Of a stretch of DNA of 64,000 nt, positions 1,986-64,000 are shown piece after piece. The DNA comes from Macrostomum lignano (taxonomy: Eukaryota), in assembly GCA_002269645.1 (NCBI GenBank), contig NIVC01002014.1:1-64000 (forward strand), in the 5' to 3' direction. Positions within the stretch are counted from its first letter, which is position 1; each line of letters starts with the position of its first letter. The notes below the pieces were generated by a model. It was not told the origin of the DNA. It saw only the letters and a program-made list of their open reading frames with translations, and did not search any database. Both the position numbers and the translations under genes were made by a program.

Positions 1986-5962
<3,977 letters not shown>

Positions 5963-20262: not shown

Positions 20263-23200
20263 TCAGCTCAGGCCATGGCCTCCACCGTCGGTTTCCGGCC
20301 GCTCCCGCGAGCGCCCGGGCAGCAGGGCAGTGAGGACCGGAACCACTCGTTCGCGCTGCGGATTCTGCGGTTCAACAGGTTTTGCAAGTCTCAACTTTCT
20401 GATCTCAGCTTCTATTCGTAAGCTACTCACACAACTTACTTCTCCAGCTTCTTCACTACATCTTCAGACACTCGTTCGTACGCCAGAATTTTCGGGACTG
20501 CCCAGTACTCCTGAGAATCGAATGAAGTGGAAGCAAAATGAGAGGAACGGCGGTAATTTCTTCCACGAAGAGTCAACATGCATCAATGGAGCTGACAAAA
20601 AGTGTGTCAAGAGTTGAATCGGCCCAACTCACCCACTTCAGCTGCATCTTCAGCTTCGTGGACGGTCCCCTGATGGCGACAATGAGCAGAAACTTTAACG
20701 ACAGAGTGGCGCTCTGCAATTAAAGTTGGTTAGCTGACGCTCATGAGCGGAAATCAAGGATTTTACACGCCTATGCAAAGCGGGCCACTCATTAACTGCT
20801 TGCGTGGTCACAGAAGTCAGTCCATGTAAAACTCGTTGGGGCTACCGAAAGCACGATGCTACTGAAGTCGCAATTTTGTCAGTAGTCAGCGGCTCGTTAC
20901 CTACAGTCGCAATAGAAAGTGGCCCATCTTGTGTGTCAACCACACAAGACCAAAGGGCAGTCACTCACCACAAAGGCGATGAACAGCACCAGTCTGTACA
21001 GAACCCGTCGGTCCTCACTGAGGTCCTGCAATCGGACAAAAACGGACAGACTGTCCGACGTGAAGGCCAGGATGGCGGCTGTGCTGAACACGCCAGCGTA
21101 GCTCAGGCAGTCCAGAATGCCGCCCCAGATGCCGAGGCCCTGGGACGGCCGGGGCAGCGGGCGGCGGTACCGGAGGAGAAGGCGGCTGGCGTCCAGGCGG
21201 AGGTCCACTGTGAGCGCGACGAGAGCGGCCACCGGGGCCAGGAAGCAGGCGGAGCCGAACAGCTGCAGAAAAATTGATGATGAAGCCCCAGGTGACATTT
21301 TGGGTGAGGTTGCAGGTGAGGTTGCAGGTGAGGTTGCAGGTGATGTTGCAGGTGATGTTGCAGGTGATGTTGCAGGTGATGTTGCAGGTGAGGTTGCAGG
21401 TGATGTTGCAGGTGATGTTGCAGGTGAGGTTGCAGGTGATGTTGCAGGTGATGTTGCAGGTGATGTTGCAGGTGATGTTGCAGGTGATGTTGCAGGTGAG
21501 GTTGCAGGTGATGTTGCAGGTGATGTTGCAGGTGATGTTGCAGGTGAGGTTGCAGGTGATGTTGCAAATGAGGTTGCAGGTGAGGTTGCAGGTGAGGTTG
21601 CAGGTGAGGTTGCAGGTGGCGATAGGATAAAGAGAGAAAAGACGTTGAAATTTTTCTAGCATGTTCAGGTTAATGACAACTAATTTTTATTCAATATTAT
21701 ACTCAGGGAGTAAAGCTCACTATTCGCGAAAAATTTAAAGACCAATGTTTGCCGTAAAATACTATTAGTAAGATAATAAGACAATGAGTTAATTTTTTAC
21801 TTGATTGTGCTCAAAGTTTCTAAATCTCTTAGTATTTAATTGATAACAACCTATATTCTATTGCTTTTTACACAACAGCCTTGATTTATGGCACCGATTC
21901 CGATTCGGAACCAAACAGCTGAACTCACCACCATATAGCCGTAGAGGATCATCTTGTCCAGGTACTCAACGTCGTCTCCCTCGTTGGCCATGTGACGCTG
22001 GCAGGCGAACTCCAGAAACTCTTCCAGCTGTTGGTCGTCTGCGTTTCCTCCGTGCCTGCGAGCACCGGGCTCCTTCAGGCGCATCTCCTGCTCATTCAGG
22101 CAGCTCAGCTCGACGCCGTACAGCTGGCTCTTCAGACAGGGGCAGAAGCAGGCCAGCAGTGACTTGAAGCAGCGTAGAGCGCTCCAAAAAGGGTGGCAGT
22201 GCTTGACGAGCCTGCGGGGCGTCAGATTGGTTGGTTTATGACTCATGAGCAAAGGATCCGTGACTCCGCAATCTGCTCTAAAGCAGCTGGGGAAATCTTA
22301 CGGCCAAAGATAGTCGATGAAACTCTTCAAAGCCGATCGGAACACGATGTAGTAGGTGGTGAGCAGGTTGAGCTGGCTGAAGCAGTCCACTCTGGTTCCG
22401 CCCAATTCGCAGTGGTCCGTGAGACTGCCTACACGGATTCCGCCCTGAGAAAAAATAATGCAAACTTTTCTGATGGCGCATACCGGAACACAGCGCACAC
22501 CATGCACATAGCACACACCATGCACATAGCACACACCATGCACATAGCGCACACCATGCACATAGCGCACACCATGCCACTAACACACACCATGCACATA
22601 GCGCACACCATGCACATAGCACACACCATGCACATAGCGCACACCATGCCACTAACACACACCATGCACATAGCGCACACCATGCACATAGCACACACCA
22701 TGCACATAGCACACACCATGCACATAGCGCACACCATGCACATAGCACACACCATGCACATAGCGCACACCATGCCACTAACACACACCATGCACATAGC
22801 GCACACCATGCCACTAACACACACCATGCACATAGCGCACACCATGCACATAGCACACACCATGCACATAGCGCACACCATGCCACTAACACACACCATG
22901 CACATAGCGCACACCATGCACATAGCACACACCATGCACATAGCACACACCATACACATAGCGCACACCATGCACATAGCGCACACCATGCCACTAACAC
23001 ACACCATGCACATAGCGCACACCATGCACATAGCACACACCATGCACATAGCACACACCATACACATAGCGCACACCATGCCACTAACACACACCATGCA
23101 CATAGCGCACACCATGCACATAGCACACACCATGCACATAGCACACACCATGCACATAGCACACACCATACACATAGCACACACCATGCACATAGCACAC

Positions 23201-26200
23201 ACCATGCACATAGCACACACCATACACATAGCACCACACACCATACACATAGCACACACACCATGCAAATAGCACCACACACCATGCACATAGCACCACA
23301 CACCATGCCACATAGCACACACCATACACATAGCACACACCATGCACATAGCACCACACACCATGCACATAGCACCACACACCATGCACATAGCACCACA
23401 CACCATGCACATAGCACCACACACCATGCCACATAGCACCACACACCATGCACATAGCACCACACACCATGCACATAGCACCACACACCATGCACATAGC
23501 ACCACACACCATGCACATAGCACCACACACCATGCACATAGCACCACACACCATGCCACATAGCACCACACACCATGCACATAGCACCACACACCATGCA
23601 CATAGCACCACACACCATGCACATAGCACCACACACCATGCACATAGCACCACACACCATGCACATAGCACCACACACCATGCACATAGCACACACCATG
23701 CACATAGCACACACCATGCACATAGCACACACCATGCCACATAGCACACACCATACACATAGCACACACCATGCAAATAGCACCACACACCATGCACATA
23801 GTACCACACACCATGCACATAGCACACACCATGCACATAGCACACACCATGCCACATAGCACCACACACCATGCACATAGCACCACACACCATGCACATA
23901 GCACCACACACCATGCACATAGCACCACACACCATGCACATACACGTAGCATAAAGCATACACCATGCCACGTAACATTCATCCAATCGCATAGCACGCC
24001 ATGCCACATAGCGCACACCGAAAAGTACATACCAAATCCCTGAGCTCATCACAAACATAAACCAGAAATGCTCAATGCCAGACATTTTAACGCCCTGCAG
24101 CTCACCAGTCGCACAAAAGCGATGTAAAACAGAGCCGCATAGTTGTTGGCAAATCTGAAAGCGAACTCCTTCATGGCGAACGAGTTCTCCTGGTCCGTCA
24201 GATAGCGGTGCCGCTCTGCGAGGTGAACAAGGCGGCGAGAGGTGAACCTTTTAGAAGATCACTAATAAATCTGGGCTTTCTCTGGCCCTGATGTCCTTTG
24301 CAACGTCTATTTGATCTGGGCATCGAACCCAGACACTTGGTCTGCCACTCTAATAATCATCTAAACTCACCCCACTTGGTAATTTTCCTCGCCAGTACGC
24401 TGTACAACTGAAAGACAAAATAAGGCCAGGATTAGATTCAGTGATTTGAAGCGCTTCCTTAACAGCCCAGGCTCTGCCAGGCAAGGTTTACCCTATCGAA
24501 GGCATCGATGAGGACGATGTGCGCCAAGGCGGGCAGAGCCGTGGCCAGGAAGAAGCAGGCCCCGCTGTCTTTGCTCTCCTCACTGGCGCCGACGCAGTGC
24601 CAGGCCGTGGCAACCAGCTTGGTGACCTGGATTGACACCGTCACCGCGAACACGATGGCCACCTGCGGTTCAGTGGTTCCCGAAGTTACAGCAAACGGTT
24701 TCATGAGCACAGTGACTTGAGCCTACTAATGAGTAGCACCGACAACATTGCGCCGGCAATCTCTTAAAGTTGATGAGGTCATGGTTTAGCGCATATCCCG
24801 CTAGTACCAGACATCAGTCCCTCTATCAAAAGACTATCAAAGCTTTAGCATGTGAATACAGAGTAAAAATTGCCGCCACTTTTTCGCATCAAACTGTAAC
24901 TATCAAGGCTCTCACGCAGGTGAAGATCAACGAAAAGCCACCGAGACAACGCAAGCAGTCCGTCTGGTGTCGACCAGTTGACTGTTGAGGGAATGTGGCG
25001 AGATTTGCATTTTTAAGGTCAGGTTTAGAGGCCAAGACACTCTGATAGTAAGAAAGATGCAACATGTCACACCTTATTAAACTGCTCCATCTTGCTTCAA
25101 GCTGCTATGGCTTTTGGAATTTTAGTCTTTCATAATAGTACATTGATACCCATGCTTTAAGGGCGTTAATGGGAAAATCAGAGGGCGCCTAATTAAGCAT
25201 AAGTATAAGATATTCCATGGGTTTGAGGTCGGTCTGTGATTAAATCCCGAGAGCTGAAGGCTCGAGGGATTTAAGTGAAATACCGCCCGAAAAACACATA
25301 GAATATCTTATTTAAACTACTTTAATTTAGCGGGATGTATTCAGATAAATCCCGGAGCCATACTTGTATGTCTATGGTTGAAGTTGAGGATGGGGGTGTG
25401 GGGGCGAAGCCCCTGCTGGGGGTGAGGGGACGAAGCCCCCACATTCTTACCATAGACAAAATTTCATTAAGAAATTTCTCGAGTCACGAAGGAAGAGAAG
25501 AGAGAAGCTCGCATATTTAGATACATACAATAATCCTTGCAATATTTCCGGGAAAGTGATCGATTAAATCCCGCAAAATAAAATCGTCTTCACAACTCTG
25601 ACGTGTTCTGCAATAGGCCTTGGTTACGAAAGTGTCGCAGGCACCAGTGAGCTGCTCAGACTCACCATGCGGCAGCAGCACCGCACGAGCACAGCTCGGT
25701 TCGGCAGCGACCTCTCTGCGAACAGCTGGTTGTTCATGTCCCAGCGGTAGCTCAGGCTGCTCTCGTACTTGCGCCACGTCTCCGTGGTGGTCATGCTCCA
25801 CAGGCTGAGCACGCAGCCGAACACAATAGTGAGCTCGTTCTCAAACACAAGTCGGATGAACTGCATCAAGCTGACCATGAATATCGACAGTCTGAGATCG
25901 GGCGGAGTGTTTTTGAAGGTAAATTTTCTTTCTTAGCGCTTTGTTTCTCCACACTAGTGACTCCTTAAGCCAGGGGCGTAGCTAGGGAGGGGGCAACGGG
26001 GGGGGCAAGAGAGCCGCGTCCCCTCTTTTCCAGCAGGCTTGGCCCCCCCCCCTCTTTTCCAGCAGGCTTGGCCCCCCCTCTTTTCCAGCAGGCTTGGCCC
26101 CCCCTCTTTTCCAGCAGGCTTGGCCCCCCCTCTTTTCCAGCAGGCTTGGCCCCCCCCTCTTTCCCAGCAGGCTTGGCCCCCCCTCTTTCCCAGCAGGCTT

Positions 26201-28427
26201 GGCCCCCCCTCTTTCCCAGCAGGCTTGGCGCCCCCCTCTTTTCCAGCAGGCTTGGCCCCCCTCTTTCCCAGCAGGCTTGGTCCCCCCTCTTTCCCAGCAG
26301 GCTTGGCCCCCCTCTTTCCCAGCAGGCTTGGTCCCCCCTCTTTCCCAGCAGGCTTGGCCCCCCCTCTTTTCCAGCAGGCTTGGCGCCCCCCTCTTTTCCA
26401 GCAGGCTTGGCCCCCCTCTTTTCCAGCAGGCTTGGCCCCCCCCCTCTTTTCCAGCAGGCTTGGCCCCCCCCCTCTTTTCCAGCAGGCTTGGCCCCCCCCC
26501 TCTTTTCCAGCAGTGGCCCCCCCTCTTTTCCAGCAGGCTTGCCCCCCCCTTTCCTAGCAGGCTTGGCGCCCCCTCTTTTCCAGCAGGCTTGCCCCCCCTC
26601 TTTTCCAGTAGGCTTGGCCCCCCCTCTTTCCCAGCAGGCTTGGCCCCCCCTTTCCTAGTAGGCTTGGCGCCCCCTCTTTTCCAGCAGGCTTGGCCCCCCT
26701 CTTTTCCAGCAGGCTTGGCCCCCCTCTTTCCCAGCAGGCTTGGCCCCCCCTCTTTCCCAGCAGGCTTGGCCCCCCCTCTTTCCCAGCAGGCTTGGCGCCC
26801 CCCTCTTTTCCAGCAGGCTTGGCCCCCCCCCCTCTTTCCCAGCAGGCTTGGCCCCCCCTCTTTCCCAGCAGGCTTGGCCCCCCCTCTTTCCCAGCAGGCT
26901 TGGCCCCCCCCCCCTCTTTCCCAGCAGGCTTGGCGCCCCCTCTTTTCCAGCAGGCTTGGCCCCCCCCCTCTTTTCCAGCAGGCTTGGCCCCCCCTCTTTC
27001 CCAGCAGGCTTGGCGCCCCCCTCTTTTCCAGCAGGCTTGGCCCCCCCTCTTTTCCAGCAGGCTTGGCCCCCCTCTTTTCCAGCAGGCTTGGCCCCCCTCT
27101 TTTCCAGCAGGCTTGGCGCCCCCCCCCAGAGACGTGCCCCCAATAGGAAATCCTGGCTGCGCCCCTGCCTTCAACACGTTGGCTTAGCAGCTCTAAAGAG
27201 ACGCTATAATCTACATAGGGAAATTGTCAATCATCTGCCTGACTCACTTGCTGCCAGTAGAAAATTGGTTTGCATTTCCACCAGTGCTGTTTAGAAATTT
27301 CTCCGACGAGGCGACATAATTGTTGGAGCTGGAAGGCAAGTTGGGCTGCAGCATTAGAGCTTTGTAGAAACATGTACAGAGCTGTGACCAGGGGCGGGGG
27401 CGGTTCACAAACTCAAAATTTCACAACGTCAAAAGCAACTTCCTTCCGAACGTCGAAAACTCTATCGCAAGGGACGTCAAGATGATAAGATTGCCGTTTC
27501 CAATACAGTGTCTGAAGCATACATTTTCAATACATCATCAAATTGAAGTACCAACACGAGGAGGAGGGGTGGGGCGGGGGGGACGCAAACACGCCAGGCG
27601 GGGGGATGGAAAAACGCCAGATGGCGCTACAGCGCAAATCAGTCATAAAAGTCACTTGCTATAGAGTTTTCAACGTTGTGAAGTTTCTAGCTTGTGAAAT
27701 AATTAGCGTTTCAATGGTGTCAAATTTCGAGCTCGTGACAGAAGCCCCATGACAGCGAGCCACCCTGGGCAGCCGCGCACTCACGCGTAGACCAGTCCGT
27801 ATATCAGGCAGGCCAGCCCGAAGGCGGTGATGAAGAGCAGACTCCAGATGATGTAGCCGACCCAGGCAAAGTAGAAGGCCATCTTCTCGCCGAAGTACAG
27901 CCTGATGAGGCTGATGGGCTGGAAGCGGCAGCAGCAGTCCCAGGTTTTCCGCAGGCGCAGCCGCAGGTCCAGTCTGGGCTTGCTTGCCACGGTGGTCTCG
28001 GGCTCGACCGCGTGACCGAGCGGGCTCAGGCAGAGGCAGCAGCAGCAGCTGGGGCCGCAGGTGCAGCACTTGGATTTTGCCCGAGTTTTGTCGTGCATGG
28101 CGAAGGCGTCAGCAAAGATGTTCGACTCGAGCAAGTACTCCAGGCCTTCACAGGGGTTGGCAAATGCTTATAGGCCTGATTCTATCTGATATTTTGATAT
28201 TTTGGAAAGCACAGCCTAAGCTAAGCACGCATTGAGTCAATTAAAACTCCTCACAGATTGGCTCTGACTCGTCTTCAGACTCCAGTCGCTCCCGCAGGCC
28301 GCTGCAGTAGCGGCAGCTCTCCTGCTCGCTGCAGAAGAACTGGTCCGGCCCCATGCGGCGCATCCGGGACCGCAGCTCCGGGCCGATGTTGATGTCTTGC
28401 AGGATGGCGTGCGTCTGCAACAGTGAC

Positions 28428-28516
<89 letters not shown>

Positions 28517-31500
28517 GATTAAATTCTGATGAAAGCTATCTGATTGAGCAGCTCACCAGGTGGATTCGCTGAGCCCCGGTCAGCGGAATGCCATCGCAGG
28601 CATCTGTCAGGTTCTGGACGACTTCGCTTGGCATGTCTTCATCTGGCAGAGTCGAGCCCGGGACCTCCTTTTCTGGCCCGCCGTAGAACAGGTGGATCTT
28701 GGCCATCAAGAAAGGCGTGCAGATGATATCGGCTGGTGTGAGCGAGGGTTGGATTGCAGACTGGATCAGCTCTGTATAAGAAAAGATTTATTTACTCCTA
28801 AGCTCAGAAAGCGGGCTTACAGTTGGCCTCATCCAGCACGTGGTCAGGCGGGTTTGTCTCTTCGACTCCGTCAGTCAGCAGGCCGGAGCAGCAGCCGCCC
28901 CAGGCCACAAAGTTGCTCACCGACGTGTTGTGCAGGGTCAACCGCTCTCCGCATGGCTGCGGTGCCAGCGTTTGAGTTGCCATGGTTTCAGCAGTGTGAC
29001 CCCTGACACACCAGTCTGGCCTCCAACACACCAGTCTGACCCCTGACACACTAGTCTGGCCTCCGACACACCAGTCTGACCCCTGACACACCAGTCTGAC
29101 TCCTGACACACTAGTCTGGCCTCCGACACACCAGTCTGGCCTCTGACACACCAGTCTGACCCCTGACACACCAGTCTGGCCTCCAACACACCAGTCTGAC
29201 CCCTGACACACTAGTCTGGCCTCCGACACACCAGTCTGACCCCTGACACACCAGTCTGACTCCTGACACACCAGTCTGACCCCTGACACACCAGTCTGGC
29301 CTCCGACACACCAGTCTGACCCCTGACACACCAGTCTGGCCTCCGACACACCAGTCTGACCCCTGACACACCAGTCTGGCCTCCGACACACCAGTCTGAC
29401 CCCTGACACACCAGTCTGGCCTCCGACACACCAGTCTGACCCCTGACACACTAGTCTGGCCTCCGACACACCAGTCTGACCCCTGACACACCAGTCTGGC
29501 CTCCGACACACCAGTCTGATCCCTGACACACCAGTCTGGCCTCCGACACACCAGTCTGACCCCTGACACACCAGTCTGGCCTCCGACACACCAGTCTGAC
29601 CCCTGACACACCAGTCTGGCCTCCGACACACCAGTCTGATCCCTGACACACCAGTCTGGCCTCCGACACAACAGTCTGATCCCTGACACACCAGTCTGGC
29701 ACCTGACATACCAGTCTGACACCTTACATACCAGTCTGACACCTGAAATACCAGTCTGACCCCTGAAAAATACGAGTCTGACCCCTGAAATACCAGTCTG
29801 ACCCCTGAAATACCAGTCTGACACCTTACATACCAGTCTGACACCTGACACACCAGTCTGACACCTGACATACCAGTCTGACACCTGACACACCAGTCTG
29901 ACACCTGACATACCAGTCTGACATCTGGCACACCAGTCTGACACCTGACACACCAGTCTGACACCTGACACACCAATCTGATACCTGACATACCATTCTG
30001 ATCCCTGAAATACCAGTCTGACACGTGGCCTACCAGTCTGACACGTGGCCTACCAGTCTGACACCTGACACACCAGTCTGACACCTGACATACCAGTCTG
30101 ACAACTGACATACCAGTCTGTCCCCTGACATACCAGTCTGACACCTGACATACCAGTCTGACACCTGACATACCAGTCTGACATCTGGCACACCAGTCTG
30201 ACACCTGACATACCAGTCTGACTCCTGACATACCAGTCTGACACCTGACATACCAGTCTGACACCTGACATACCAGTCTAATACCTGACATACCAGTCTG
30301 ACACCTGACATACCAGTCTGACACCTGAAAAACCAGTCTGACACCTGACAAACCAGTCTGACACCTGACATACCAGTCTGACACCTGACACACCAGTCTG
30401 ACACCTGACATACCAGTCTGACACCTGACACACCAGTCTGACACCTGACAAACCAGTCTGACACCTGACATACCAGTCTGACACCTGACACACCAGTCTG
30501 ACACCTGACATACCAGTCTGACACCTGACACACCAGTCTGACACCTGACATACCAGTCTGACATCTGGCACACCAGTCTGACACCTGACATACCAGTCTG
30601 ACACCTGACAAACCAGTCTGACACCTGACATACCAGTCTGACACCTGAAAAACCAGTCTGACACCTGACATACCAGTCTGACACCTGACATACCAGTCTG
30701 ACACCTGAAAAACCAGTCTGACACCTGACATACCAGTCTGACACCTGACATACCAGTCTGACACCTGACATACCAGTCTGACACCTGACATACCAGTCTG
30801 ACACCTGACACACCAGTCTGACACCTGACATACCAGTCTGACACCTGACAAACCAGTCTGACACCTGACAAACTAGTCTGACACCTGACACACCAGTCTG
30901 ACACCTGACATACCAGTCTGACACCTGACACACCAGTCTGACACCTGACACACCAGTCTGACACCTGACACACCAGTCTGATCCCTGACACACCAGTCTG
31001 ACACCTGACACACCAGTCTGATCCCTGACACACCAGTCTGACACCTGACACACCAGTCTGATCCCTGACACACCAGTCTGACACCTGACACACCAGTCTG
31101 ATCCCTGACAAACCAGTCTTACACCTGACACACCAGTCTGACACCTGACATACCAGTCTGACACCTGACAAACCAGTCTAATCATCTTATCATCTGAACA
31201 TCAGACTACTCTAATCATCTGAAAACAGACAGTCCAATGCCACTTACACCTTTGAGAGGCAGCTCCATCAAAAGAGCCTCAGCCTTCCTGAGCAGCACCA
31301 GCGAGTTCGCTCTGAACCCCAGGTAGTGAGACACGAACTCGCAGGACTTCCTGTCACCCTTCTCAGGCGGGAATCTCATTGACCTGCTGGTCACAGTGAG
31401 GCCCCGGGCCTCCGCGCCCAGCTTGAAGTAGCGACGCGCCCAGTGCTTGGCCTGGCAGCGCCGGTCCTCGGCGAAGGCGCGCACCGTGGCATAGTGCAGT

Positions 31501-31532
31501 GCGAACTCCGCCACCCGATTGTCCTGCTCCAT
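20263..31532 (-). CDS. Anoctamin/TMEM16 paralog A, 16 coding exons
   Basis: Exons 31532-31248, 28956-28821, 28732-28557, 28414-28255, 28145-27785, 25891-25666, 24981-24916, 24662-24492, 24407-24371, 24215-24106, 22444-22302, 22211-21929, 21262-20969, 20713-20633, 20510-20440, 20364-20263. Motifs FAMHD, IRLYFGEKMAFYFAW, MKEFAFRFANNYAALFYIAF, EYLDKMILYG, DLRLDASR..RRP..GLGIW. Start Met inferred by homology to paralog B; a further upstream exon near 31910-31947 is possible. Confidence 0.9.
21306..21617. repeat. 12-bp repeat (gttgcaggtga[t/g]), anoctamin A intron 12
   Basis: Direct reading. Confidence 0.93.
22490..23945. repeat. 18-bp (gcacacaccatgcacata) grading into 21-bp (gcaccacacaccatgcacata) satellite, anoctamin A intron 10
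   Basis: The 21-bp units appear from about 23230. Confidence 0.93.
25971..27167. mobile_element. hAT-like non-autonomous element (MITE) whose interior is a ~26-27 bp minisatellite
   Basis: TIRs CAGGGGCGTAGCTAGG (25971) and CCTGGCTGCGCCCCTG (ends 27167) match 14/16. Flanking 8-mers ccttaagc and ccttcaac match 6/8, consistent with a decayed 8-bp TSD. About 40 copies of cccctcttttccagcaggcttggccc inside. Lies in anoctamin A intron 5. Confidence 0.7.
27400..27740. mobile_element. Decayed fold-back MITE (TCACAA-motif arms)
   Basis: ttcacaaactcaaaatttcacaacgtcaaaa at the left is imperfectly inverted with ttttcaacgttgtgaag...aaatttcgagctcgtga at the right. A similar arm occurs near 48760-48805. 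Confidence 0.4.
28427..28516. repeat. (GTCT)n, anoctamin A intron 3
   Basis: Direct reading. Confidence 0.92.
28995..31180. repeat. 20-bp satellite (ccagtctgacacctgacaca), about 110 copies, with a 40-bp dimer in the left third; anoctamin A intron 1
   Basis: Left part alternates ccagtctgacccctgacaca and ccagtctggcctccgacaca. Confidence 0.94.
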
Positions 31533-35172: not shown

Positions 35173-35449
<277 letters not shown>

Positions 35450-39284: not shown

Positions 39285-39331
39285 TATTGGCTTTTGCAAA
39301 ACGCAGCCCTGCATTATAAAGACAACCGCCC
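39285..39331 (+). promoter_or_regulatory. Core promoter of lectin 2 (inverted CCAAT, TATA, CCGCCCAG)
   Basis: ATTGGCTTT ... TATAAAGA (39315) .. CCGCCCAG, with the TATA 50 nt upstream of the ATG. The same three motifs occur in the same order before lectin 3. Confidence 0.6.
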
Positions 39332-39364
39332 AGCTGCTGCAGAGCCCCACTTCAACCCGAAAGC

Positions 39365-42227: not shown

Positions 42228-42600
<373 letters not shown>

Positions 42601-44968: not shown

Positions 44969-45006
44969 CATTGGCTTTCTTGTGTAGTATAAAGAGTTCC
45001 GCCCAG
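44969..45006 (+). promoter_or_regulatory. Core promoter of lectin 3 (inverted CCAAT, TATA, CCGCCCAG)
   Basis: ATTGGCTTT ... TATAAAGA (44988) .. CCGCCCAG, with the TATA 41 nt upstream of the ATG. Confidence 0.6.
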
Positions 45007-45028
45007 GGCCCCACCAGGATCTAAAGAC

Positions 45029-46398: not shown

Positions 46399-53119
<6,721 letters not shown>

Positions 53120-54034
53120 ACCGGAGTTGCCGAGCAACTAAAATCACTTGCTGCTAAATCACCTGCACCGAGCGGCTTTCTGCTCTTCCAACCCGAGTAG
53201 CCTGTGCAGCCAGACAGCCAGATAAGCAGCCGAAAAAGCGGTAGCAAGATGAATAAAGACAGGCCGAGAGGCTGCGACAAAACTTATCTGCTGGCCTTCG
53301 CTTTCTATCTGCGCCGGCCTCTGCACCCCCTGCTCAGCTGGTTAGCAACCGAGCTCGCGCACTGGAGACGAAAAGAAAGTTTGAGATATTTTGCGCGAAC
53401 ACAAAGCCTGCTGCACTGTGGGTTGTGCTTGCCATTACACTTTGGCTGCTTCTCTCACCTCGCATCCAATTAGCTTCACTGAATGCAATTGCATATTTTG
53501 TTATTTTTCTCGCTTTGGGGCTTAGAAGGACCCTTCGGCCTTCAAAGTCCACGCATCCGATGGCGGTGGACAGCTCTGTACAGATCTGACTCTCCCACGC
53601 TGTATTTCTACCGTAGCTCGCTCACGATGTACCATCCGTGGCAAATTATGCTTAACTTTGCAGTGCCGGTGGTGAATCCGTAATAGAGTGGCTTCCTCTC
53701 GCACAGTCAGCACCGATCCCGACTTTCAATGCCAGGGTTTGTCCTGCGGCACTCAGGCCTGATGGCATCGCCCGTCCACTAAAGCGGATCAGGCAGTGAC
53801 CTGGAAGCGCTGCTAAAAATATGCTGATAAAAGCCGCAAAAATCACCTAAAACCAGCAACTGAAAGTCGTAGATTTTAATGGGAGCTCATCGAACCGGTA
53901 AACGGTTTACCTCATCAATTAGCCTTCGGCAACAGCTGAAGTGGTTAAAAGCAGTCCTTTGTGTGACTCAGGAGTCTAAAGTCAGCAAATTTTCTATCAC
54001 TAAAATTGATCGCTTCCAGAAGAACCGCTTAGCC

Positions 54035-57000
54035 ATGCCAGCCGTCTGCAGGAACCTCTGCGCTCTGATCCTGAGCTGCTTCATCTGCTCCGCTCTCTGC
54101 CACCAGTTCCGGGCCTCGGACCTCGGCTGCTTCGTTGACTCAGCGACAGAGAGAGACGTCAGAGGCCTAAAGTACCTCGGCCTCACGCGAGTCGGTGGCC
54201 ACGGCATGGAGCAGACAAATATTTCCAGTGCCTACGGCTTGGTCCACTCCACCCAGATGACTCACGAGCTGTGCGGCTTCCGCTACATGGCACTGCAGGC
54301 CGCGACTTGGTGCGGCTGCGACAACTCCTACGGGTCGCATGGCGCGGCCCCTAGCGGCGACTGCTGGCATGCCTGCGCGGGTACTGCGGTCCATACCGGA
54401 ATCAAGTGTACCGACTGACCTTCACTCAGTGGTAAAACAATAGTGCAGACTAGGAGTCCAGAGAGAGGCAAGATGCAATGCCCGAGTATGCTTGCCCTGA
54501 GTTTCTCATCATCGGACATGCAATCACCCTGCGCCTTGAGGAATTGACCCTAAGGCCAGTTTTCGTACACGAATATGATGACGAACCCCGGGTACTTTGA
54601 CACGACACCTAAGACACGTGGGTTAGTTACCGCTGGGCTACTCTGTACCTAAGGGTTACCGCTGGGCTACTTTGTACCTAAGGGTTACCGCTGGGCTACT
54701 CTGTACCTAAGGGTTACCGCTGGGCTACTCTGTACCTAAGGGTTACCGCTGGGCTACTCTGTACCTAAGGGTTACCGCTGGGCTACTCTGTACCTAAGGG
54801 TTACCGCTGGGCTACTCTGTACCTAAGGGTTACCGCTGGGCTACTCTGTACCTAAGGGTTACCGCTGGGCTACTCTGTACCTAAGGGTTACCGCTGGGCT
54901 ACTCTGTACCTAAGGGTTACCGCTGGGCTACTCTGTACCTAAGGGTTACCGCTGGGCTACTCTGTACCTAAGGGTTACCGCTGGGCTACTCTGTACCTAA
55001 GGGTTACCGCTGGGCTACTCTGTACCTAAGGGTTACCGCTGGGCTACTCTGTACCTAAGGGTTACCGCTGGGCTACTCTGTACCTAAGGGTTACCGCTGG
55101 GCTACTCTGTACCTAAGGGTTACCGCTGGGCTACTCTGTACCTAAGGGTTACCGCTGGGCTACTCTGTACCTAAGGGTTACCGCTGGGCTACTCTGTACC
55201 TAAGGGTTACCGCTGGGCTACTCTGTACCTAAGGGTTACCGCTGGGCTACTCTGTACCTAAGGGTTACCGCTGGGCTACTCTGTACCTAAGGGTTACCGC
55301 TGGGCTACTCTGTACCTAAGGGTTACCGCTGGGCTACTCTGTACCTAAGGGTTACCGCTGGGCTACTCTGTACCTAAGGGTTACCGCTGGGCTACTCTGT
55401 ACCTAAGGGTTACCGCTGGGCTACTCTGTACCTAAGGGTTACCGCTGGGCTACTCTGTACCTAAGGGTTACCGCTGGGCTACTCTGTACCTAAGGGTTAC
55501 CGCTGGGCTACTCTGTACCTAAGGGTTACCGCTGGGCTACTCTGTACCTAAGGGTTACCGCTGGGCTACTCTGTACCTAAGGGTTACCGCTGGGCTACTC
55601 TGTACCTAAGGGTTACCGCTGGGCTACTCTGTACCTAAGGGTTACCGCTGGGCTACTCTGTACCTAAGGGTTACCGCTGGGCTACTCTGTACCTAAGGGT
55701 TACCGCTGGGCTACTCTGTACCTAAGGGTTACCGCTGGGCTACTCTGTACCTAAGGGTTACCGCTGGGCTACTCTGTACCTAAGGGTTACCGCTGGGCTA
55801 CTCTGTACCTAAGGGTTACCGCTGGGCTACTCTGTACCTAAGGGTTACCGCTGGGCTACTCTGTACCTAAGGGTTACCGCTGGGCTACTCTGTACCTAAG
55901 GGTTACCGCTGGGCTACTCTGTACCTAAGGGTTACCGCTGGGCTACTCTGTACCTAAGGGTTACCGCTGGGCTACTCTGTACCTAAGGGTTACCGCTGGG
56001 CTACTCTGTACCTAAGGGTTACCGCTGGGCTACTCTGTACCTAAGGGTTACCGCTGGGCTACTCTGTACCTAAGGGTTACCGCTGGGCTACTCTGTACCT
56101 AAGGGTTACCGCTGGGCTACTCTGTACCTAAGGGTTACCGCTGGGCTACTCTGTACCTAAGGGTTACCGCTGGGCTACTCTGTACCTAAGGGTTACCGCT
56201 GGGCTACTCTGTACCTAAGGGTTACCGCTGGGCTACTCTGTACCTAAGGGTTACCGCTGGGCTACTCTGTACCTAAGGGTTACCGCTGGGCTACTCTGTA
56301 CCTAAGGGTTACCGCTGGGCTACTCTGTACCTAAGGGTTACCGCTGGGCTACTCTGTACCTAAGGGTTACCGCTGGGCTACTCTGTACCTAAGGGTTACC
56401 GCTGGGCTACTCTGTACCTAAGGGTTACCGCTGGGCTACTCTGTACCTAAGGGTTACCGCTGGGCTACTCTGTACCTAAGGGTTACCGCTGGGCTACTCT
56501 GTACCTAAGGGTTACCGCTGGGCTACTCTGTACCTAAGGGTTACCGCTGGGCTACTCTGTACCTAAGGGTTACCGCTGGGCTACTCTGTACCTAAGGGTT
56601 ACCGCTGGGCTACTCTGTACCTAAGGGTTACCGCTGGGCTACTCTGTACCTAAGGGTTACCGCTGGGCTACTCTGTACCTAAGGGTTACCGCTGGGCTAC
56701 TCTGTACCTAAGGGTTACCGCTGGGCTACTCTGTACCTAAGGGTTACCGCTGGGCTACTCTGTACCTAAGGGTTACCGCTGGGCTACTCTGTACCTAAGG
56801 GTTACCGCTGGGCTACTCTGTACCTAAGGGTTACCGCTGGGCTACTCTGTACCTAAGGGTTACCGCTGGGCTACTCTGTACCTAAGGGTTACCGCTGGGC
56901 TACTCTGTACCTAAGGGTTACCGCTGGGCTACTCTGTACCTAAGGGTTACCGCTGGGCTACTCTGTACCTAAGGGTTACCGCTGGGCTACTCTGTACCTA

Positions 57001-57350
57001 AGGGTTACCGCTGGGCTACTCTGTACCTAAGGGTTACCGCTGGGCTACTCTGTACCTGATAGCCCAGCATCAGATTAAGGCATAACGCCTAACAAAAATC
57101 ACTGCAGACGAGAGCCTTTCATCGTCCTCGGTGACCGCGACCTGGTGGCCATGAGCAGCCCCGACTCTCGTCGCTTTCTCGATCGTCAGCGCTCGTGGAC
57201 TCGCCGAGTGCGTCGACCAGTGCGGCACCGACTGTCAGTCGGTGATCTTCAGCCAGCTGCAGCGCCTGTGCCACCTGCTGGAGTTTGCATGCTGCAGTCC
57301 CGGCCGCCCTCAGAAGCGCCAGCAGCGGCGACTTCTTCGTCCGTGGCTGA
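54035..57350 (+). pseudogene. Secreted WSC-domain + C-terminal PAN/Apple-domain gene, disrupted (or mis-assembled)
   Basis: From 54035: leader plus WSC motifs LGCFVDS..RDV..MTHELC.GFRYMALQAATWCGCDNSYG..DCWHACAG. A second exon at about 57108-57350 encodes FIVLGDRDLVAMSSP / TLVAFSIVSARGLAECVDQCGTDCQSVIFSQLQRLCHLL / SGDFFVRG* with two frame changes. One early WSC Cys and the WSC C-terminal CGG..N segment are missing. Confidence 0.65.
54626..57057. repeat. Near-perfect 29-bp tandem array (gggttaccgctgggctactctgtacctaa), about 84 copies
   Basis: 2432 bp / 29. The only internal variant I saw is ctttgt in copy 2 (about 54672). Confidence 0.97.
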
Positions 57351-59264
57351 ACTGAAGGCAACTAAAAGCCAGCGAGCACTGATTACTGAAACCTGACTCT
57401 CGCGAACAAACTGTTTCTATTTCAGATTTTCAAGGCCTGCTGTTGTGACTGTCCCTCTCTTACGTGCCCTTGTACTGTCTGTATTCCAGCCCTTTGAAGC
57501 CCGTACCAGCAGAGGCGGAAACCAGGGAGCCAGATGTACAAAGTGACGAAAGTTTAAATAAAAGGTGTCGCAAAAAAACTGCTCTGGTTTGATTGCGATT
57601 TGTCCGACCGTGAGCTGGATGCAGACCAGCTCTGTTGGCTCCCTTATTGGGTTTGAAATGAAGACTCCAATGTATCGTGAAAGAAGACTCCTGCTGCGTC
57701 ATCGGTGTGAAAGTGCTTCAAGGATCGAACAATGGAATACTTTGTGATTGTAACAGGTAGGATTTTGTGTCCATCCTGCACCTTCTGCTCACGTTGGATA
57801 ACAAAGAATTGAACTCGAAGCACGGTTTTCTGGGCCCAGGCTGCTGCGGCCTACAGCCCAGCCGAGGCAATGGCCATGCCTTTAGGCCCGCAGATGCGGG
57901 CGAGAGCAAAGTGAAGCGAGCGCCTCCACTGTCTCTCCTTTTATTTAAAACACTGCAGAACAGGCGCGTGGGAACGTAAACTCTTATAGGCTACACAGAA
58001 CAAAATGCAAATTTCGCAGCAAGTTTTAGGTGCAGCCGTCCTTTGCAAATATGACTGCATTTTATGCAGCTCATATCCCTCCGTGGTTTAAAAAACTTCG
58101 ACACCTCGAAGCATAGTTTAAAGTTGAACCGTGCTGGAAAACACCAGTCATGAGTATAGCTAGTAATGTTGGTCTCCTCCAGCCGGGTCGCTACCATTCC
58201 TCAGTTCGCGCTGCTCTAAGGGGGTCAGCCTTGAAGTCCGCCACCTCGGAAACGGGCATGCAGTCCTCGTGAGCTATCTTAAGTAGCTTCACTGGCATGT
58301 CTATGGCATGCACAGATCGTGCTCCGGTCTTCCTGCCGGATGCACCGCAGACTTCCCTCGCAGTCTTCTTGCTGTGGGGAGGCGACTCTTGGCCTTTGGG
58401 CCGAAACACTGCTCCGCTTTTGAGACGCATCGCCTCTCAGGGCAGGAAAATTGATCTGCATGCCGGTCGCCGAGACAGTGACGCCGGGGCTGACTCTCTT
58501 CTTGTCGATCCATCCGAACGGCAGTTGAACACGCGTCAGTTGGGGCGGCGGCTGCACCGTGGTGGCAGTTAAACTGAACCACCGTTGCGACTTAATGCCG
58601 TCAAGCACGCCAACGAGCACTGTTGACTTTGGCACGAGCCACGCAGGCAAATGACAGTCAAGCCAAACATTGACGGGTGCCAACGTTTGTAATTTTTTGC
58701 TGCGCGTTTTCGCCATAGTGTGTCAAAGATACGCAGGTGCACTAGAACGCTGAAATATAGTCCAGTAGTCCATAGCATGTGCCAGTGCGCGCTTATGCAG
58801 TCTTCTCCGTCTGAGTGACCATTTGCGTCACCCCTGCTAACTTTGCCCCCATTTTTCTTTGATTTTCTCTCCCCTAGCGCGCTGATTGGCCGCGGTGTGG
58901 AGGCTCTCGTTCACTCTCTCTCTCACCCCTGTGTGCCTGCCCCCAGCTTAGCCTCCCATGCAAGCGCCACTCATTGTCAGAAATTTCGTGTGGACGCATA
59001 CAAGCATGTGTGGACAAACACAAAACAGCTTGCTCTCGAGTCTGCCAGACTGCTTCATCGATCTGGATACTTCTTCCAAGAAGACGCTGATCACTGTGCG
59101 ATATGAGCTCTCAGCCGGGGGTGCTAGTAGAACATTTGAGGCCTGTGTGCTGCTGGGATGCACGGCTGGCTTTCTACGGGTGTTGCGGCATCAGATACTC
59201 GACATGCGGAATGTAACAAACTGCTCAGACAGGGTGTACGGCGGCCCCTGACTTTCTAATCATC

Positions 59265-59640
59265 GTGAGTCAGACTGTGAATCAGACTGTGAGTCAGACT
59301 GTAAGCCATACTGTGAGTCAGACTGTGAGCCAGACTGTGAGTCAGACTGTGAGTCAGACTGTGAGCCAGACTGTGAGTCAGACTGTGAGTCAGACTGTGA
59401 GTCAGACTGTGAGCCAGACTGTGAGTCAGACTGTGAGCCAGACTGTGAGTCAGACTGTGAGTCAGTGAGTCAGACTGTGAGTCAGACTGTGAGCCAGACT
59501 GTGAGTCAGACTGTGAGCCAGACTGTGAGTCAGACTGTAAGTCAGACTGTGAGTCAGACTGTGAGTCAGACTGTGAGCCATACTGTGAGTCGGACTGTGA
59601 GTCAGACTGTGAGTCAGACTGTGTGTCAGACTGTGATCCA
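59265..59640. repeat. 12-bp repeat (tgagtcagactg), about 31 copies
   Basis: Direct reading. Confidence 0.93.
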
Positions 59641-60058
59641 GACCTCACAGACCGTGTCCCTATTCCCGGTAAAACACGAGTCAGCTCTAATCCCAAGCGA
59701 ATTGATGTTTAGCAAAGCTGTGTAAAAGAGCCACTTTATTGTCAGAAATAAAAAAATAATCTGTAGTCAGCATCGCAAAGTATTTATAATTTTTGAGCAG
59801 GGTGCAAAACGCAGGAAGAGAACTGGTATTACACTTGCAGGAAGCGGTTTCAAAGTACCCTAGTATAGTCTACTAATAACTGGATTGAGCAAGGCGTTTT
59901 TAACTGAAAGTTTGTCGCGTAAAATAGCCAATAGTGCATGCGATTTGTTGCCGTTTCTGTTCAACAAAGGCACTGGTTCTAATTTCATATCAGACCGTCT
60001 TTTCAGTACATGATGACGGTATTTCCATGGAATTTCCGCGGCTTTTCCGGCTCCCGGC

Positions 60059-63000
60059 CTACACCAACTGCGGTCCGGCCTCCGGATTCGGGGTCGTGAT
60101 CGTGGCGCAGCAGGGGCACAGCGCGTGGTACCACCGGTTCTTGTCCTGCATCCTGTGGGCCGGGAGGACGGGAGGGTGCTCGGGATGTCTCTCTGATCCC
60201 AAGCCAGTCCCGCTCTGATCCCAAGCCAGCCCCGCTCTGATCCCAAGCCAGTCTCGCTCTGATCTCAAACCAGTCCCGCTCTGATCTCAAGCCAGTCCCG
60301 CTCTGATCTCAAGCCAGTCCCGCTCTGATCTCAAGCCAGTCCCGCTCTGATCTCAAGCCAGTCCCGCTCTGATCTCAAGCCAGTCCCGCTCTGATCCCAA
60401 GCCAGTCCCGCTCTGATCTCTGTACTTCCCAACAACGTACTTCTGCAGGCTGGCGAGAACTCCAGGTTCGACTTTGTCATCCGTGAGAATCTTCTTCACA
60501 TAGAAGTACTCCTGCGTGTGGAGAATGACGTATCATTAAGTGAAGTCTTGAAACTGACTCCATAGAAACCCTGAGACTCACCCATTTCAAACAGAGCTTC
60601 AGCTTCCGAGGCATGTCCCCGATGGAAATTACCAGCAAAAACTTGATGGCCAGCATGGCGTTCTGAAAGTCAATTAGATATTGATAGTGGAATGCAATTA
60701 GCTGTAAGACCACGCAGAGACTCTAGGACTCAGCCAGTCTAGGACTCAGGGACTAAAGGACTCAGGGACTCTAGGAGTCAGGGACTCCAGGACTCAGGGA
60801 CTCTAGGAGTCAGGGACTCCAGGACTCAGGGACTCTAGGACTCAGCGAGTCTAGGACTCAGGGACTCCAGGACTCAGGGACTCTAGGACTCAGCGAGTCT
60901 AGGACTCAGGGACTCTAGGACTCAGCGAGTCTAGGACTGAGGGACTCTAAGACTCAGCCAGTCTAGGACTGAGGGACTCTAAGACTCAGCCATTCTAGGA
61001 CTCTGGGACTCTAGAAGCCAGGGAATCCAGGACTCAGGGACTCTAGGACTCAGGGACTCCAGGACTCAGCGAGTCTAGGACTCAGGGACTCTAGGACCAA
61101 TCGATAAGGCTCAAAGATGCTCCGATCACCTCAAAGACGATGAAGAAGATCAGCCTGTTGGAGTCCATTGTGGCCACGCCGTAAATGCTGAGACTTTGCG
61201 ACGTGAAGGCCAAGATCGCCCCGGTGGTGAAGATGCCGGCGAAGCTGAGAAAGTCGAGCAGCCAGTTCCAGACGCCGATGCCCGGAGCCGGCAGCGGCAC
61301 GGGCCTGCGGTACAGAAACAGCAGCCGCTTCGAGTCCAGCCGCAGGTCGATTGCCATGGCGATGAGGGCCACCGCGGGCGCCAAGTAGAAGGCGGAGCCG
61401 AACATCTGCGAGGATTCGAGAATCTCCCAGGCATTTCGGTTAGGGACTTGGGAACCAAAGTTGGGATCCAAACACCGAGATGGAGCTGAGAGAGAGGATG
61501 TGCCTTTAGTGCGGTGTTGGTTGCGGACTGGTGGCCTTGGTAGAGTGCAGTGAATCGATGAATTGTTTCAATGGCTAACGCGTCCGACTCCAGCCTTTTA
61601 GCATTTGGGTTCGAGGGTCCGCGTTTGGAGAGTCCGCGTTTGGAGAGTCCGCGTTTGGAGACTCCGGGTTTGGAGGGTCCGCATTTGGAGAGTCCGCGTT
61701 TGGAGACTCCGGGTTTGGAGGGTCCGCGTTTGGAGAGTCCGCGTTTGGAGACTCCGGGTTTGGAGGGTCCGCGTTTGGAGAGTCCGCGTTTGGAGACTCC
61801 GGGTTTGGAGGGTCCGCGTTTGGAGAGTCCGGGTTTGGAGAGTCCGGGTTTGGAGAGTCCGCGTTTGGAGAGTCCGGGTTTGGAGAGTCCGCGTTTGGAG
61901 AGTCCGGGTTTGGAGAGTCCGGGTTTGGAGAGTCCGGGTTTGGAGAGTCCGCGTTTGGAGAGTCCGGGTTTGGAGAGTCCGCGTTTGGAGAGTCCGGGTT
62001 TGGAGAGTCCGGGTTTGGAGGGTCCGCGTTTGGAGAGTCCGCGTTTGGAGAGTCCGGGTTTGGAGACTCCGGGTTTGGAGACTCCGGGTTTGGAGAATCC
62101 GGGTTCGAGAGATTGGGTTCGAGTGTCCGGGTTTGGAGGTTCCGGGTTTGGAGAGTCCGGGTTTGGAGAGTCCGGGTTTGGAGACTCCGGGTTTGGAGAC
62201 TCCGGGTTTGGAGAATCCGGGTTCGAGAGGTTGGGTTCGAGTGTCCGGGTTTGGAGGTTCCGGGTTTGGAGAGTCCGGGTTTGGAGAGTCCGAGTTTGGA
62301 GATTCCGGGTTTGGAGACTCCGGGTTTGGAGACTCCGGGTTTGGAGGGTCCGGGTTTGGAGGGTCCGGGTTTGGAGGGTCCGGGTTTGGAGGGTCCGGGT
62401 TTGGAGGGTCCGGGTTTGGAGACTCCGGGTTCGAGAGGTTGGGTTCGAGTGTCCGGGTTTGGAGAGTCCGGGTTTGGAGACTCCGGGTTTGGAGACTCCG
62501 GGTTTGGAGACTCCGGGTTTGGAGACTCCGGGTTTGGAGACTCCGGGTTTGGAGACTCCGGGTTTGGAGACTCCGGGTTTGGAGACCCGGGTTTGAAGCC
62601 ATTAGGGCCAGACTCCAAGACACAAAGTGCACGAATGTTTGTCAATGGCAAAGGCCGCTGTGCACCCTGTGAGTCCCTGTGGATCAGCAGAACGGTCCTG
62701 ACTGCTTGCCAAGCTCAGCGCGAACTCACGGTCATGAATCCGTACAGGATGACCTTCTCCAGGTACTCGTCCAGCAGCATCTCCTGCTCCTTGGACTTGA
62801 CGAGGTGCCGCTGCTCAGCGAACGCCAGCTTGCCGCTCGGCCTGGTCTCGCCGAGCTTGGCCATGTGGTTGCGCTCCAGCTCGGCCAGGATCTCCAGCTC
62901 CACCGAGTAGCCCAGCATCCTGATGCAGGGGCAGCAGGCTCTGAGGAAGCCGCGCAGCCCCCGGAGAGTGCAGCCCGTGAGCATTGACCGCTTCAGGTAG

Positions 63001-64000
63001 CTGAGGGGATCAGGGCAAATGCCTGAAATCTGCCACGCCGTTTATGAGCATAAGCGACATTAAAAGTAGTTGATAAACCATAAGCGACACAGTCCATGAA
63101 CCTCAGACCAGTCCATGAGCCACAGACCAGTCCATGAACCTCAGACCAGTCCATGAACCTCAGAAACCAGTCCATGAACCTCAGACACCAGTCCATGAAC
63201 CTCAGACACCAGTCCATGAACCTCAGACACCAGTCCAAGAACCTCAGACACCAGTCCAAGAACCTCAGAGACCAGTCCATGAACCTCAGAGACCAGTCCA
63301 TGAACCTCAGAGACCAGTTCATGAGCCAGAGACCAGTCCATGAACCTCAGACACCAGTCCATGAACCTCAGAGACCAGTCCATGAACCTCAGAGACCAGT
63401 CCAAGAACCTCAGACACCAGTCCAAGAACCTCAGACACCAGTCCATGAACCTCAGAGACCAGTCCAAGAACCTCAGAGACCAGTTCATGAGCCACAGACC
63501 AGTCCATGAACCTCAGAGACCAGTCCAAGAACCTCAGAGACCAGTCCATGAACCTCAGACACCAGTCCATGAACCTCAGAGACCAGTCCATGAACCTCAG
63601 AGACCAGTCCAAGAACCTCAGACACCAGTCCATAAACCTCAGAGACCAGTCCATGAACCTCAGAGACCAGTCCAAGAACCTCAGACACCAGTCCATGAAC
63701 CTCAGACACCAGTCCAAGAACCTCAGACACCAGTCCATGAACCTCAGAGACCAGTCCAAGAACCTCAGAGACCAGTCCATGAGCCACAGACCAGTCCATG
63801 AGTCACAGACCAGTCCATAAGTCGCGGGTCTACAAGAACCCGATCAATTCCTACCCATAAAAGCGGCACCGCAAGAGCAATGAACACTACAAAACTTTGA
63901 CTGCTGCTATCTAAAAACCCAAGCCAAACAAAAGCGCAATTCTCTGCTCACGGCCACATGATGTCGGCACCGCTTTTGAGCAGCGACTTGCCCACCATGT
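60059..64000 (-). CDS. Anoctamin/TMEM16 paralog C, 3' part only (exons 11-16; gene continues beyond the window)
   Basis: Exons >64000-63952 (MVGKSLLKSGADIMWP), 63000-62730 (LDEYLEKVILYGFMT), 61405-61130 (FYLAPAVALIAMAIDLRLDSKR..RRP..GIGVW), 60662-60582, 60511-60441, 60152-60059. The 81- and 71-nt exons match those of A and B. Confidence 0.88.
60190..60420. repeat. 22-bp repeat (ctctgatctcaagccagtcccg), about 10 copies, anoctamin C last intron
   Basis: Direct reading. Confidence 0.9.
60715..61095. repeat. Mixed short repeat (ggactc[t/c]aggactca..), anoctamin C intron 13
   Basis: Direct reading; unit length varies. Confidence 0.85.
61610..62595. repeat. 15-bp repeat (gggtttggaga[g/c]tcc), anoctamin C intron 12
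   Basis: Direct reading. Confidence 0.93.
63090..63820. repeat. 21-bp repeat (ccagtccatgaacctcagaga), anoctamin C intron 11
   Basis: Direct reading. Confidence 0.93.

Follow-up and report, generated by a model that had tools for sequence, protein, structure and literature searches.

How does an anoctamin bind calcium when a lysine stands in the column of one of its calcium-binding asparagines? This question is raised by three tandem anoctamin (TMEM16) genes, here called A, B and C, which lie on the minus strand of contig NIVC01002014.1 of the flatworm Macrostomum lignano (assembly GCA_002269645.1) and share a common layout of 17 exons. The window, meaning the whole stretch of 64,000 nucleotides (nt) that was analysed, has the same coordinates as the source record and a G+C content of 52%. 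To our knowledge, all work on the gating mechanism of TMEM16 proteins rests on a two-Ca2+ cage made of five carboxylates and three asparagines. An initial annotation of the window described this cage as systematically rebuilt in the three paralogs, with one lysine in place of an asparagine, and proposed a clade that binds one Ca2+ ion, binds Ca2+ weakly or does without it. The analysis presented here points to an older origin, as the pattern is the hallmark of a whole subfamily, TMEM16L, rather than a flatworm curiosity, and the whole subfamily may bind Ca2+ differently. On balance, we lean towards TMEM16L being a distinct mechanistic class in which two tethered lysines would permanently fill part of the cage and leave one Ca2+ ion or none at the primary site, with the yeast protein IST2 as an independent second use of the same device.

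The eight motif strings that had been quoted for transmembrane helices 6, 7 and 8 (TM6, TM7 and TM8) were located by six-frame translation of the window, all on the minus strand and where they had been reported, and these site motifs fall in exons 12, 13 and 14 of each gene (Table 1). Residue equivalences were read from a clade profile, built from A, C and four relatives with B left out, and aligned to mouse TMEM16F. The alignment is ungapped over TM6, where N620 is matched by the lysine, N621 by the residue after it, E624 by the aspartate and P628 by the proline; E-Y-L-E-K of TM7 corresponds to E667-Y-L-E670-M671, and x-x-x-x-D-x-R-x-D of TM8 to N-N-I-L-E699-I-R-V-D703. TMEM16F binds two Ca2+ ions via N620, N621, E624, E667, E670, E699 and D703, and is one residue shorter near the hinge than TMEM16A (PMC8640346), which accounts for an apparent one-residue offset when the genes are set against TMEM16A. 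Column N620 of TMEM16F is N650 of TMEM16A and E624 is E654, and TMEM16A numbering is used from here on. The ligands of TMEM16A are five acidic residues with N650, N651 and N730, and alanine mutants of these asparagines reduce the Ca2+ potency (PMC7118279), in agreement with the list that the initial annotation had given.

The placement of the lysine in the N650 column, as originally proposed, is borne out by this alignment. Across columns 654/702/705/734/738 A reads D, E, D, D, D and both B and C read D, E, E, D, D, and across columns 650/651/730 the residues are K, S, A in A and C and K, V, T in B. The five acidic positions had been described as remaining acidic, the TM6 and TM8 glutamates as shortened to aspartate and the TM8 asparagine pair as lost, and each of these changes is seen in the columns of all three genes. 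What had been overlooked is a second lysine, as well conserved as the first, which is the last residue of EYLEK and occupies the M706 column. Six of the nine site positions are identical across A, B and C, and conservation across the subfamily is taken to be a stronger statistic than this identity among neighbours.

The clade profile was used in a full HMMER scan of 1.84 billion cluster representatives, which replaced a word-indexed profile search that had returned only Macrostomum and oomycete proteins and had missed the echinoderm relatives. The top 150 matches were aligned to one model and sorted by their TM8 residues into 48 L-type sequences (D at E734 and a residue other than Asn at N730) and 85 canonical sequences (defined by N730/N731); the L-type representatives are no more than 50% identical to each other, and 47-48 of them could be scored per column. 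Lysine occupies the N650 column in 44/48 (91%) and the M706 column in 44/47 (93%), set against a median column conservation of 53%. Asp stands at E654 in 41/48 (87%), Glu is kept at E702 in 44 (93%) and at E705 in 40 (85%), and Asp is kept at D738 in 47 (98%). Owing to the sorting criteria, N730 is never Asn and E734 is always Asp in this set; Asn is retained at N731 in 21. Lysine was found at 650 or 706 in none of the 85 canonical representatives, where column 650 holds N, G or S and column 706 holds M, L, V or I. The combination K650, D654, K706, non-Asn 730 and D734 is defined here as the TMEM16L signature, and all five residues are present in A, B and C. Whether the pattern might prove common in characterised Ca2+-activated TMEM16 proteins had been raised as a concern; it is absent from every characterised TMEM16 as well as from the 85 canonical representatives.

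The named L-type sequences come from a crinoid, an urchin, a sea cucumber, a brittle star, a brachiopod, gastropods, bivalves, an octopus, a tick, a stony coral, a ctenophore, catsharks and a paddlefish. The closest homologs outside Macrostomum are one rotifer and three echinoderm proteins, and the pattern recurs in all three of the latter (VKPVPKFLKDVILP, EYNEK and LLLDIRID). In the rotifer protein (Brachionus, P0008) K650 is replaced by Thr and acidic ligands are neutralised (N654, Q705), changes that look as if charge were being balanced. The choanoflagellate Didymoeca costata protein P0148 is intermediate (N650, E654, N705, K706, D734), which hints that K706 and D734 may have arisen before K650 and D654.

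A subfamily with this distribution has been named before. TMEM16L (ANO11), which dates to the base of animals, was defined by Yuan, Zhu & Kadowaki 2022 (bioRxiv 10.1101/2022.04.22.489151), who gave PAA61603.1, PAA66696.1 and PAA54271.1 as M. lignano members arranged in tandem and found TMEM16L proteins to be without the TM6 hinge glycine except for PAA61603.1 and PAA66696.1. At 90% identity PAA54271.1 clusters with A and PAA61603.1 with C. As expected from the exceptions of Yuan et al., the hinge glycine is present in B and C and absent from A. From the order of the accessions and the position of the gene we infer that B is PAA66696.1, and on a sister contig a 953-residue anoctamin is called between C and A, at the place of B. 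The likeness of A, B and C to TMEM16L extends to the site signature, the neighbour-joining clade and the hinge-glycine distribution, and their identity as tandem TMEM16L paralogs is largely shown, by direct match for A and C and indirectly for B. The genes themselves were already known, but no earlier description of their lysine-lined pocket seems to exist; Yuan et al. 2022 make no mention of either lysine, of the Glu-to-Asp changes or of the asparagines that are missing. These authors also stated that TMEM16L was lost in vertebrates, with human and zebrafish as their vertebrate sampling. This is contradicted by the catsharks and the paddlefish, since the full signature is present in P0076 (Scyliorhinus torazame, with S. 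canicula and Hemiscyllium as cluster members) and P0081 (Polyodon spathula). The shark and paddlefish proteins bear names such as 'anoctamin-7-like' and 'anoctamin-10-like', and database names for TMEM16L proteins are inconsistent in general (anoctamin-4-like, 5-like, 6-like, 7-like and 10-like).

In a neighbour-joining tree all signature-bearing sequences formed one clade with A, B and C inside it, and A + B + C were monophyletic in 29/30 bootstraps. The choanoflagellate protein and one unnamed sequence were considered as true sisters of the Macrostomum genes and rejected, since this placement is probably long-branch attraction in a distance tree. The idea that the site was rebuilt in each of the three paralogs does not hold: because these residues are shared by TMEM16L proteins of ctenophores through to sharks and the three genes are monophyletic, the site is best read as the ancestral TMEM16L signature, inherited once before A, B and C separated. 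Independent convergence of the three paralogs on the same site has nothing in its favour beyond the shared pattern itself; with ctenophores, cnidarians, molluscs and echinoderms carrying the same residues as sharks, and A, B and C grouped within the signature clade, it is scarcely credible.

The same columns bear on the view that nothing has changed in Ca2+ binding, i.e. that the site still holds two Ca2+ ions, that the lysines face lipid, phosphatidylinositol 4,5-bisphosphate or the TM6-TM7 loop, and that the asparagine losses slightly lower the affinity. From the conservation of the five Glu/Asp, Yuan et al. 2022 took all the proteins to be Ca2+-activated, and in the genes described here these acidic ligands are indeed intact. 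Among the 85 canonical proteins the N650 column also varies (41 with N, 20 with G, 13 with S), and alanine at the asparagine ligands lowers potency in TMEM16A (PMC7118279). However, 650 is a direct ligand position, on the helix face of E654 and four residues before it, and lysines that are each conserved in more than 90% of the subfamily and in 0/85 canonical proteins have changed together with N730 and both glutamates, which would not be expected of side chains lying outside the site. Furthermore, charge-reversing substitutions of acidic ligands abolish Ca2+ binding at the primary site of TMEM16A (PMC8640346). An ordinary site is considered unlikely on this evidence.

The fold was approached through sequence searches of the PDB, with single sequences and with the clade profile, in which the closest solved relatives were ANO6 followed by ANO1 (4e-111 with the clade profile). 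C was modelled with AlphaFold2 from a 51-sequence alignment; the model has a predicted template-modelling score of 0.84 and a mean predicted local distance difference test score of 78, with high confidence at the site, and its TM6 is a continuous helix (residues 604-639). The top 50 Foldseek matches of this model in the PDB were all TMEM16F, TMEM16A, TMEM16K, nhTMEM16 or afTMEM16 (best E 1.4e-24), and the best were Ca2+-bound mouse TMEM16F structures (8tag, 8b8k and 6qp6; target-normalised template-modelling score about 0.71) with Ca2+-free structures close behind. A, B and C are accordingly predicted to have the ten-helix TMEM16 fold, as modelled for C. The Foldseek ranks were also considered as a means of telling Ca2+-bound from Ca2+-free conformations and were set aside, as the scores are too close (0.71 and 0.67).

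Mouse TMEM16F (ANO6), a Ca2+-activated scramblase and non-selective channel, is the best match to the A/B/C clade in both sequence and structure. The spacing in TM6 is the same, with the additional residue of TMEM16A absent, and its five acidic ligands are in the same columns, although identity is about 18-19% in the structural alignment and the genes described here differ from it by N620 to K, N621 to S/V, E624 to D, M671 to K, N695/N696 to residues other than Asn, and E699 to D. With mouse TMEM16A (ANO1), a Ca2+-activated chloride channel, they share the family, the fold and acidic residues at E654, E702, E705, E734 and D738, but N650, N651 and N730 are replaced, lysines are present at 650 and 706, and the distance from the hinge to the ligands is one residue shorter.

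Positions 650, 706 and 730 would each be displaced by one helical turn, towards the membrane, from an acidic ligand (654, 702 and 734, respectively) and together would form the top layer of the cage. This layer appears to have changed as a set in TMEM16L, N to K, M to K and N to T/V/A, while the shortening of the two flanking glutamates to aspartate would make room for the lysine side chains. If the two ammonium groups reach into the five-carboxylate cage they would supply the charge of one Ca2+ ion and leave a single Ca2+ site, and five carboxylates, two lysines and one Ca2+ would give a net charge of -1, the same as that of a canonical pocket with two Ca2+ ions. Such a protein would be expected to act as a TMEM16F-like scramblase or non-selective channel that responds to Ca2+ with one ion at the primary site, with a shallower dose-response and TM6 partly pre-docked on TM7/TM8. 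A cation is probably still bound, since TMEM16L, from ctenophores to vertebrates, has retained the five acidic residues at 85-100%, while IST2 has lost three. We put an even chance on this arrangement of two tethered lysines and one Ca2+ ion, in which both lysine side chains would point into the cage.

IST2, a constitutive scramblase of the yeast endoplasmic reticulum, supplies a solved precedent and the mechanistic model for a pocket lysine in place of Ca2+. Its K443 'replaces Ca2+' in that it makes a bifurcated salt bridge to a TM6 Glu and a TM8 Asp; this lysine takes the place of the E705-equivalent Glu, and three of the five acidic residues are lost (PMC12618243). The genes described here differ from it in keeping E or D in the E705 column and all five acidic residues, in carrying their lysines at 650 and 706, in having no long C-terminal tether, and in a sequence similarity that is weak (6e-6 to the clade profile). 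IST2 is accordingly treated as a functional analogy and not as a member of the group, and with this precedent the changed Ca2+ stoichiometry that had been proposed for the locus is plausible.

The TM6 of the Macrostomum proteins differs from that of a typical TMEM16L, which mostly lacks the hinge glycine and has a K-P-x-P-K stretch. TM6 reads FRSALK in A and GKSLLK in B and C, with no proline in any of them and no K-P-x-P-K stretch. B and C appear to have regained the hinge glycine. N731, Asn in 21 of the L-type sequences, is lost in A, B and C, so of the TM8 asparagine pair, whose loss had been presented as a trait of the clade, N730 is lost throughout the subfamily and the loss of N731 seems to be a Macrostomum feature. 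A further difference, missed by the earlier annotation, concerns the third Ca2+ site (E395, K398 and D859 of TMEM16F, the last in I-P-D859), which is conserved in most TMEM16L and in C (E..K and IGD) and degraded in A and B. A retains the Glu and has an Arg, but Gly stands in place of the Asp (IRG); B has exchanged the Glu for Arg and the Asp for Lys (CSK), so that both acidic residues are now basic. In the TM8 D-x-R-x-D motif of B the conserved Arg has become Cys, and in its TM7 an Arg appears at the fourth residue after K706 (TILRGYLL, 47501-47539), where A and C carry Tyr; this TM7 Arg may be a relocated charge.

These features have a bearing on whether TMEM16L might go as far as IST2, with the two lysines satisfying the cage on their own, TM6 locked on TM7/TM8 and activity constitutive in the absence of Ca2+. 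In addition to the IST2 lysine itself (PMC12618243), such a protein would fit the missing hinge glycine and the two TM6 prolines of most TMEM16L, the loss of third-site ligands in A and B with charge reversal in B, and the straight, continuous TM6 of the C model, which is nearest to Ca2+-bound TMEM16F. The last point is blunted by how barely Foldseek separates the two sets of templates. Two lysines set against five carboxylates would leave a net charge of -3, the five acidic positions are maintained where IST2 gave up three, and most TMEM16L, like C, have a conserved third Ca2+ site. Full Ca2+ independence is therefore regarded as improbable, and partial filling of the cage by the two lysines is preferred.

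Several points weigh against the preferred arrangement. The helical-turn geometry and the charge bookkeeping are things that we infer, and the missing hinge glycine with K-P-x-P-K in most TMEM16L would fit a fixed TM6 without Ca2+ gating equally well. The published reading is that of ordinary Ca2+ activation (Yuan et al. 2022), and a literature search returned no other paper treating TMEM16L and no functional data for any TMEM16L. The exact L clade was recovered in only 12/30 bootstraps, with a few long-branch sequences shifting, and the Macrostomum proteins are on a long branch with a TM6 unlike that of typical TMEM16L, which makes transfer from other species uncertain. Lastly, a look-up of the exact proteins of A and C for transcript evidence led to the genome assembly only, and a literature search with the locus tags was empty.

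TMEM16L is an old branch of TMEM16 in which the carboxylates have been kept, the polar or hydrophobic top of the cage has been exchanged for two lysines and two glutamates have been shortened, and it is present from ctenophores to sharks and paddlefish and absent from mammals and the usual model animals. If the lysines do enter the site, it would be a natural experiment on the number of Ca2+ ions needed to move TM6 and on how the charge of the cage controls gating, and would show how a ligand-gated scramblase or channel drifts towards constitutive activity, as in IST2. The assumed 'Ca2+-activated' label and the inconsistent database names are in need of correction.

The gene models on which the site assignments rest are as follows. 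Gene A matches its database protein exactly, exon by exon. Residues 616-894 of gene C map to 63998-60062 with one residue different from PAA66695.1, and the gene leaves the window at its end. Gene B was rebuilt as an uninterrupted reading frame of 961 residues with 16 splice junctions that are canonical except for one GC donor. This donor, in exon 11 (CAG|GCAAGC, 48883-48891), retains the conserved 'VRQ', and an in-frame GT donor 9 nt upstream, chosen by the UniProt model, would lose three residues. That model (P0005) is partial and mis-spliced, as it lacks the last part of exon 13 and the first part of exon 14, and the error flanks an intron made of (ACT)75 (47266-47500). The Pfam Anoctamin family (PF04547) matches A at 4.6e-79 over profile positions 1-457 of 460 and C at 1.2e-89 over positions 1-455 of 460, and B can be aligned throughout with both. 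Overall identity among the three proteins is 40-45%, and 31% of the anoctamin-domain columns are the same in all three. For the N-terminal dimerisation domain (PF16178) C scored 20.9 bits against a cut-off of 22 and A had no match; with the clade profile the N-terminal region can be aligned to TMEM16F from residue 65. A protein that was considered as a fourth Macrostomum sequence, P0069, is identical to C in TM7 and TM8 and diverges at the end of TM6, and it looks like a mis-modelled copy of C.

The reading frames are complete in A and B and in the part of C that lies in the window, so the description of the genes as intact anoctamins stands on open frames and on the full-length Pfam matches of A and C. 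A second copy of the locus (NIVC01001541.1:183159-217678) is about 97% identical to 48091-64000 of the window. In the exons of C 1/837 nt differ between the copies, with about 1% mismatches in the aligned block overall, and in exons 1-11 of B 15/1911 nt differ, 8 synonymous and 7 non-synonymous, with 5/7 of the latter in a low-complexity stretch at codons 287-292. From these few differences the dN/dS of B (its non-synonymous substitution rate over its synonymous one) is roughly estimated at near 0.3, and the comparison fits purifying selection, though the numbers are small.

Decay had been judged an unlikely cause of the altered site, and the same view is reached here. The proposal would be that A, B and C are non-functional or degenerating duplicates with an eroding Ca2+ site, and it can draw on the long Macrostomum branch, on the changes of B (Cys for the TM8 Arg, and both third-site acidic residues lost), on the highly duplicated genome and on the fact that the exact-protein look-up and the locus-tag search found no expression record. 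In A and B, nevertheless, none of the 17 exons is interrupted and the splice sites are usable, the residues of the site match those conserved subfamily-wide, the exons diverge less than the neighbouring DNA between the locus copies, with the dN/dS of B as estimated above, and purifying selection was reported in all subfamilies (Yuan et al. 2022). Decay is therefore thought very improbable.

Protein accessions indicate a third copy of the locus on a 129-kb contig. The genome of M. lignano is known to be duplicated, and the extra copies fit this. Upstream of C on the second copy there is a gene with low-density-lipoprotein-receptor class A repeats.

Table 1. Positions of the three TMEM16L genes, their calcium-site motifs and other features of the window (residue numbers such as N650 are those of TMEM16A; aa, amino acids)
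Feature	Position	Strand	Remarks
Gene A, TMEM16L anoctamin, 925 aa, 17 exons	20268..31532	-	PAA61601.1 (P0001), exact exon-by-exon match
A, TM6: FRSALKSFIDYLWP	22301..22342	-	K at N650, S at N651, D at E654; hinge Gly replaced by F
A, TM7: EYLDK	21953..21967	-	E702 kept, E705 to D, M706 to K
A, TM8: ALTVDLRLD	21191..21217	-	N730 to A, N731 to L, E734 to D, D738 kept
A, TM2 part of third site, exon 7	25666-25890	-	
A, TM10 part of third site, exon 15	20633-20713	-	
Gene B, TMEM16L anoctamin, 961 aa, 17 exons	46399..53119	-	Model rebuilt in this analysis
B, TM6 site	47916..47957	-	K at N650, V at N651, D at E654
B, TM7: EYLEK	47525..47539	-	
B, TM8: TLLIDLCLD	47194..47220	-	N730 to T; Cys for the Arg of D-x-R-x-D
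B, TM2 part of third site, exon 7	50187-50409	-	
B, TM10 part of third site, exon 15	46848-46928	-	
Gene C, 3' part, aa 616-894 of an 894-aa protein	60059..64000	-	PAA66695.1 (P0002)
C, TM6: GKSLLKSGADIMWP	63951..63992	-	Protein residues K623, S624, D627
C, TM7: EYLEK	62754..62768	-	Protein residues E709, E712, K713
C, TM8: AMAIDLRLD	61334..61360	-	Protein residues A737, M738, D741, D745
C, TM10 part of third site	60582-60662	-	
First single-exon frame between A and B	32428-33402	+	
Second single-exon frame between A and B	39320-40135	+	
Third single-exon frame between A and B	44993-45802	+	Begins with a signal-peptide-like segment
Intron satellite stretches	47266-47500, 21303-21618, 22488-23942, 26020-27124, 28992-31179, 51504-51849, 61613-62595, 63090-63818		
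571-aa open frame, 'Adaptor complexes medium subunit' (mu-homology) domain	8697-10409	-	Pfam PF00928, 2.3e-11

The plus strand between A and B carries three single-exon open reading frames, paralogs of about 270 residues each that share 80-86% DNA identity. They are Cys-rich and end in WYW..C..(E/Q)PN..ALCEC, and at least the third encodes a signal-peptide-like start (Table 1). A Pfam scan of the three frames gave no match; their C-terminal end resembles a C-type lectin domain. Long micro- and minisatellites pack the introns of all three anoctamin genes, and a (TGTC)n array is found in intron 3 of A and of B as well as at 4337-5002 and 42228-42599. The frame with the mu-homology domain probably belongs to a neighbouring gene that lies downstream of A.

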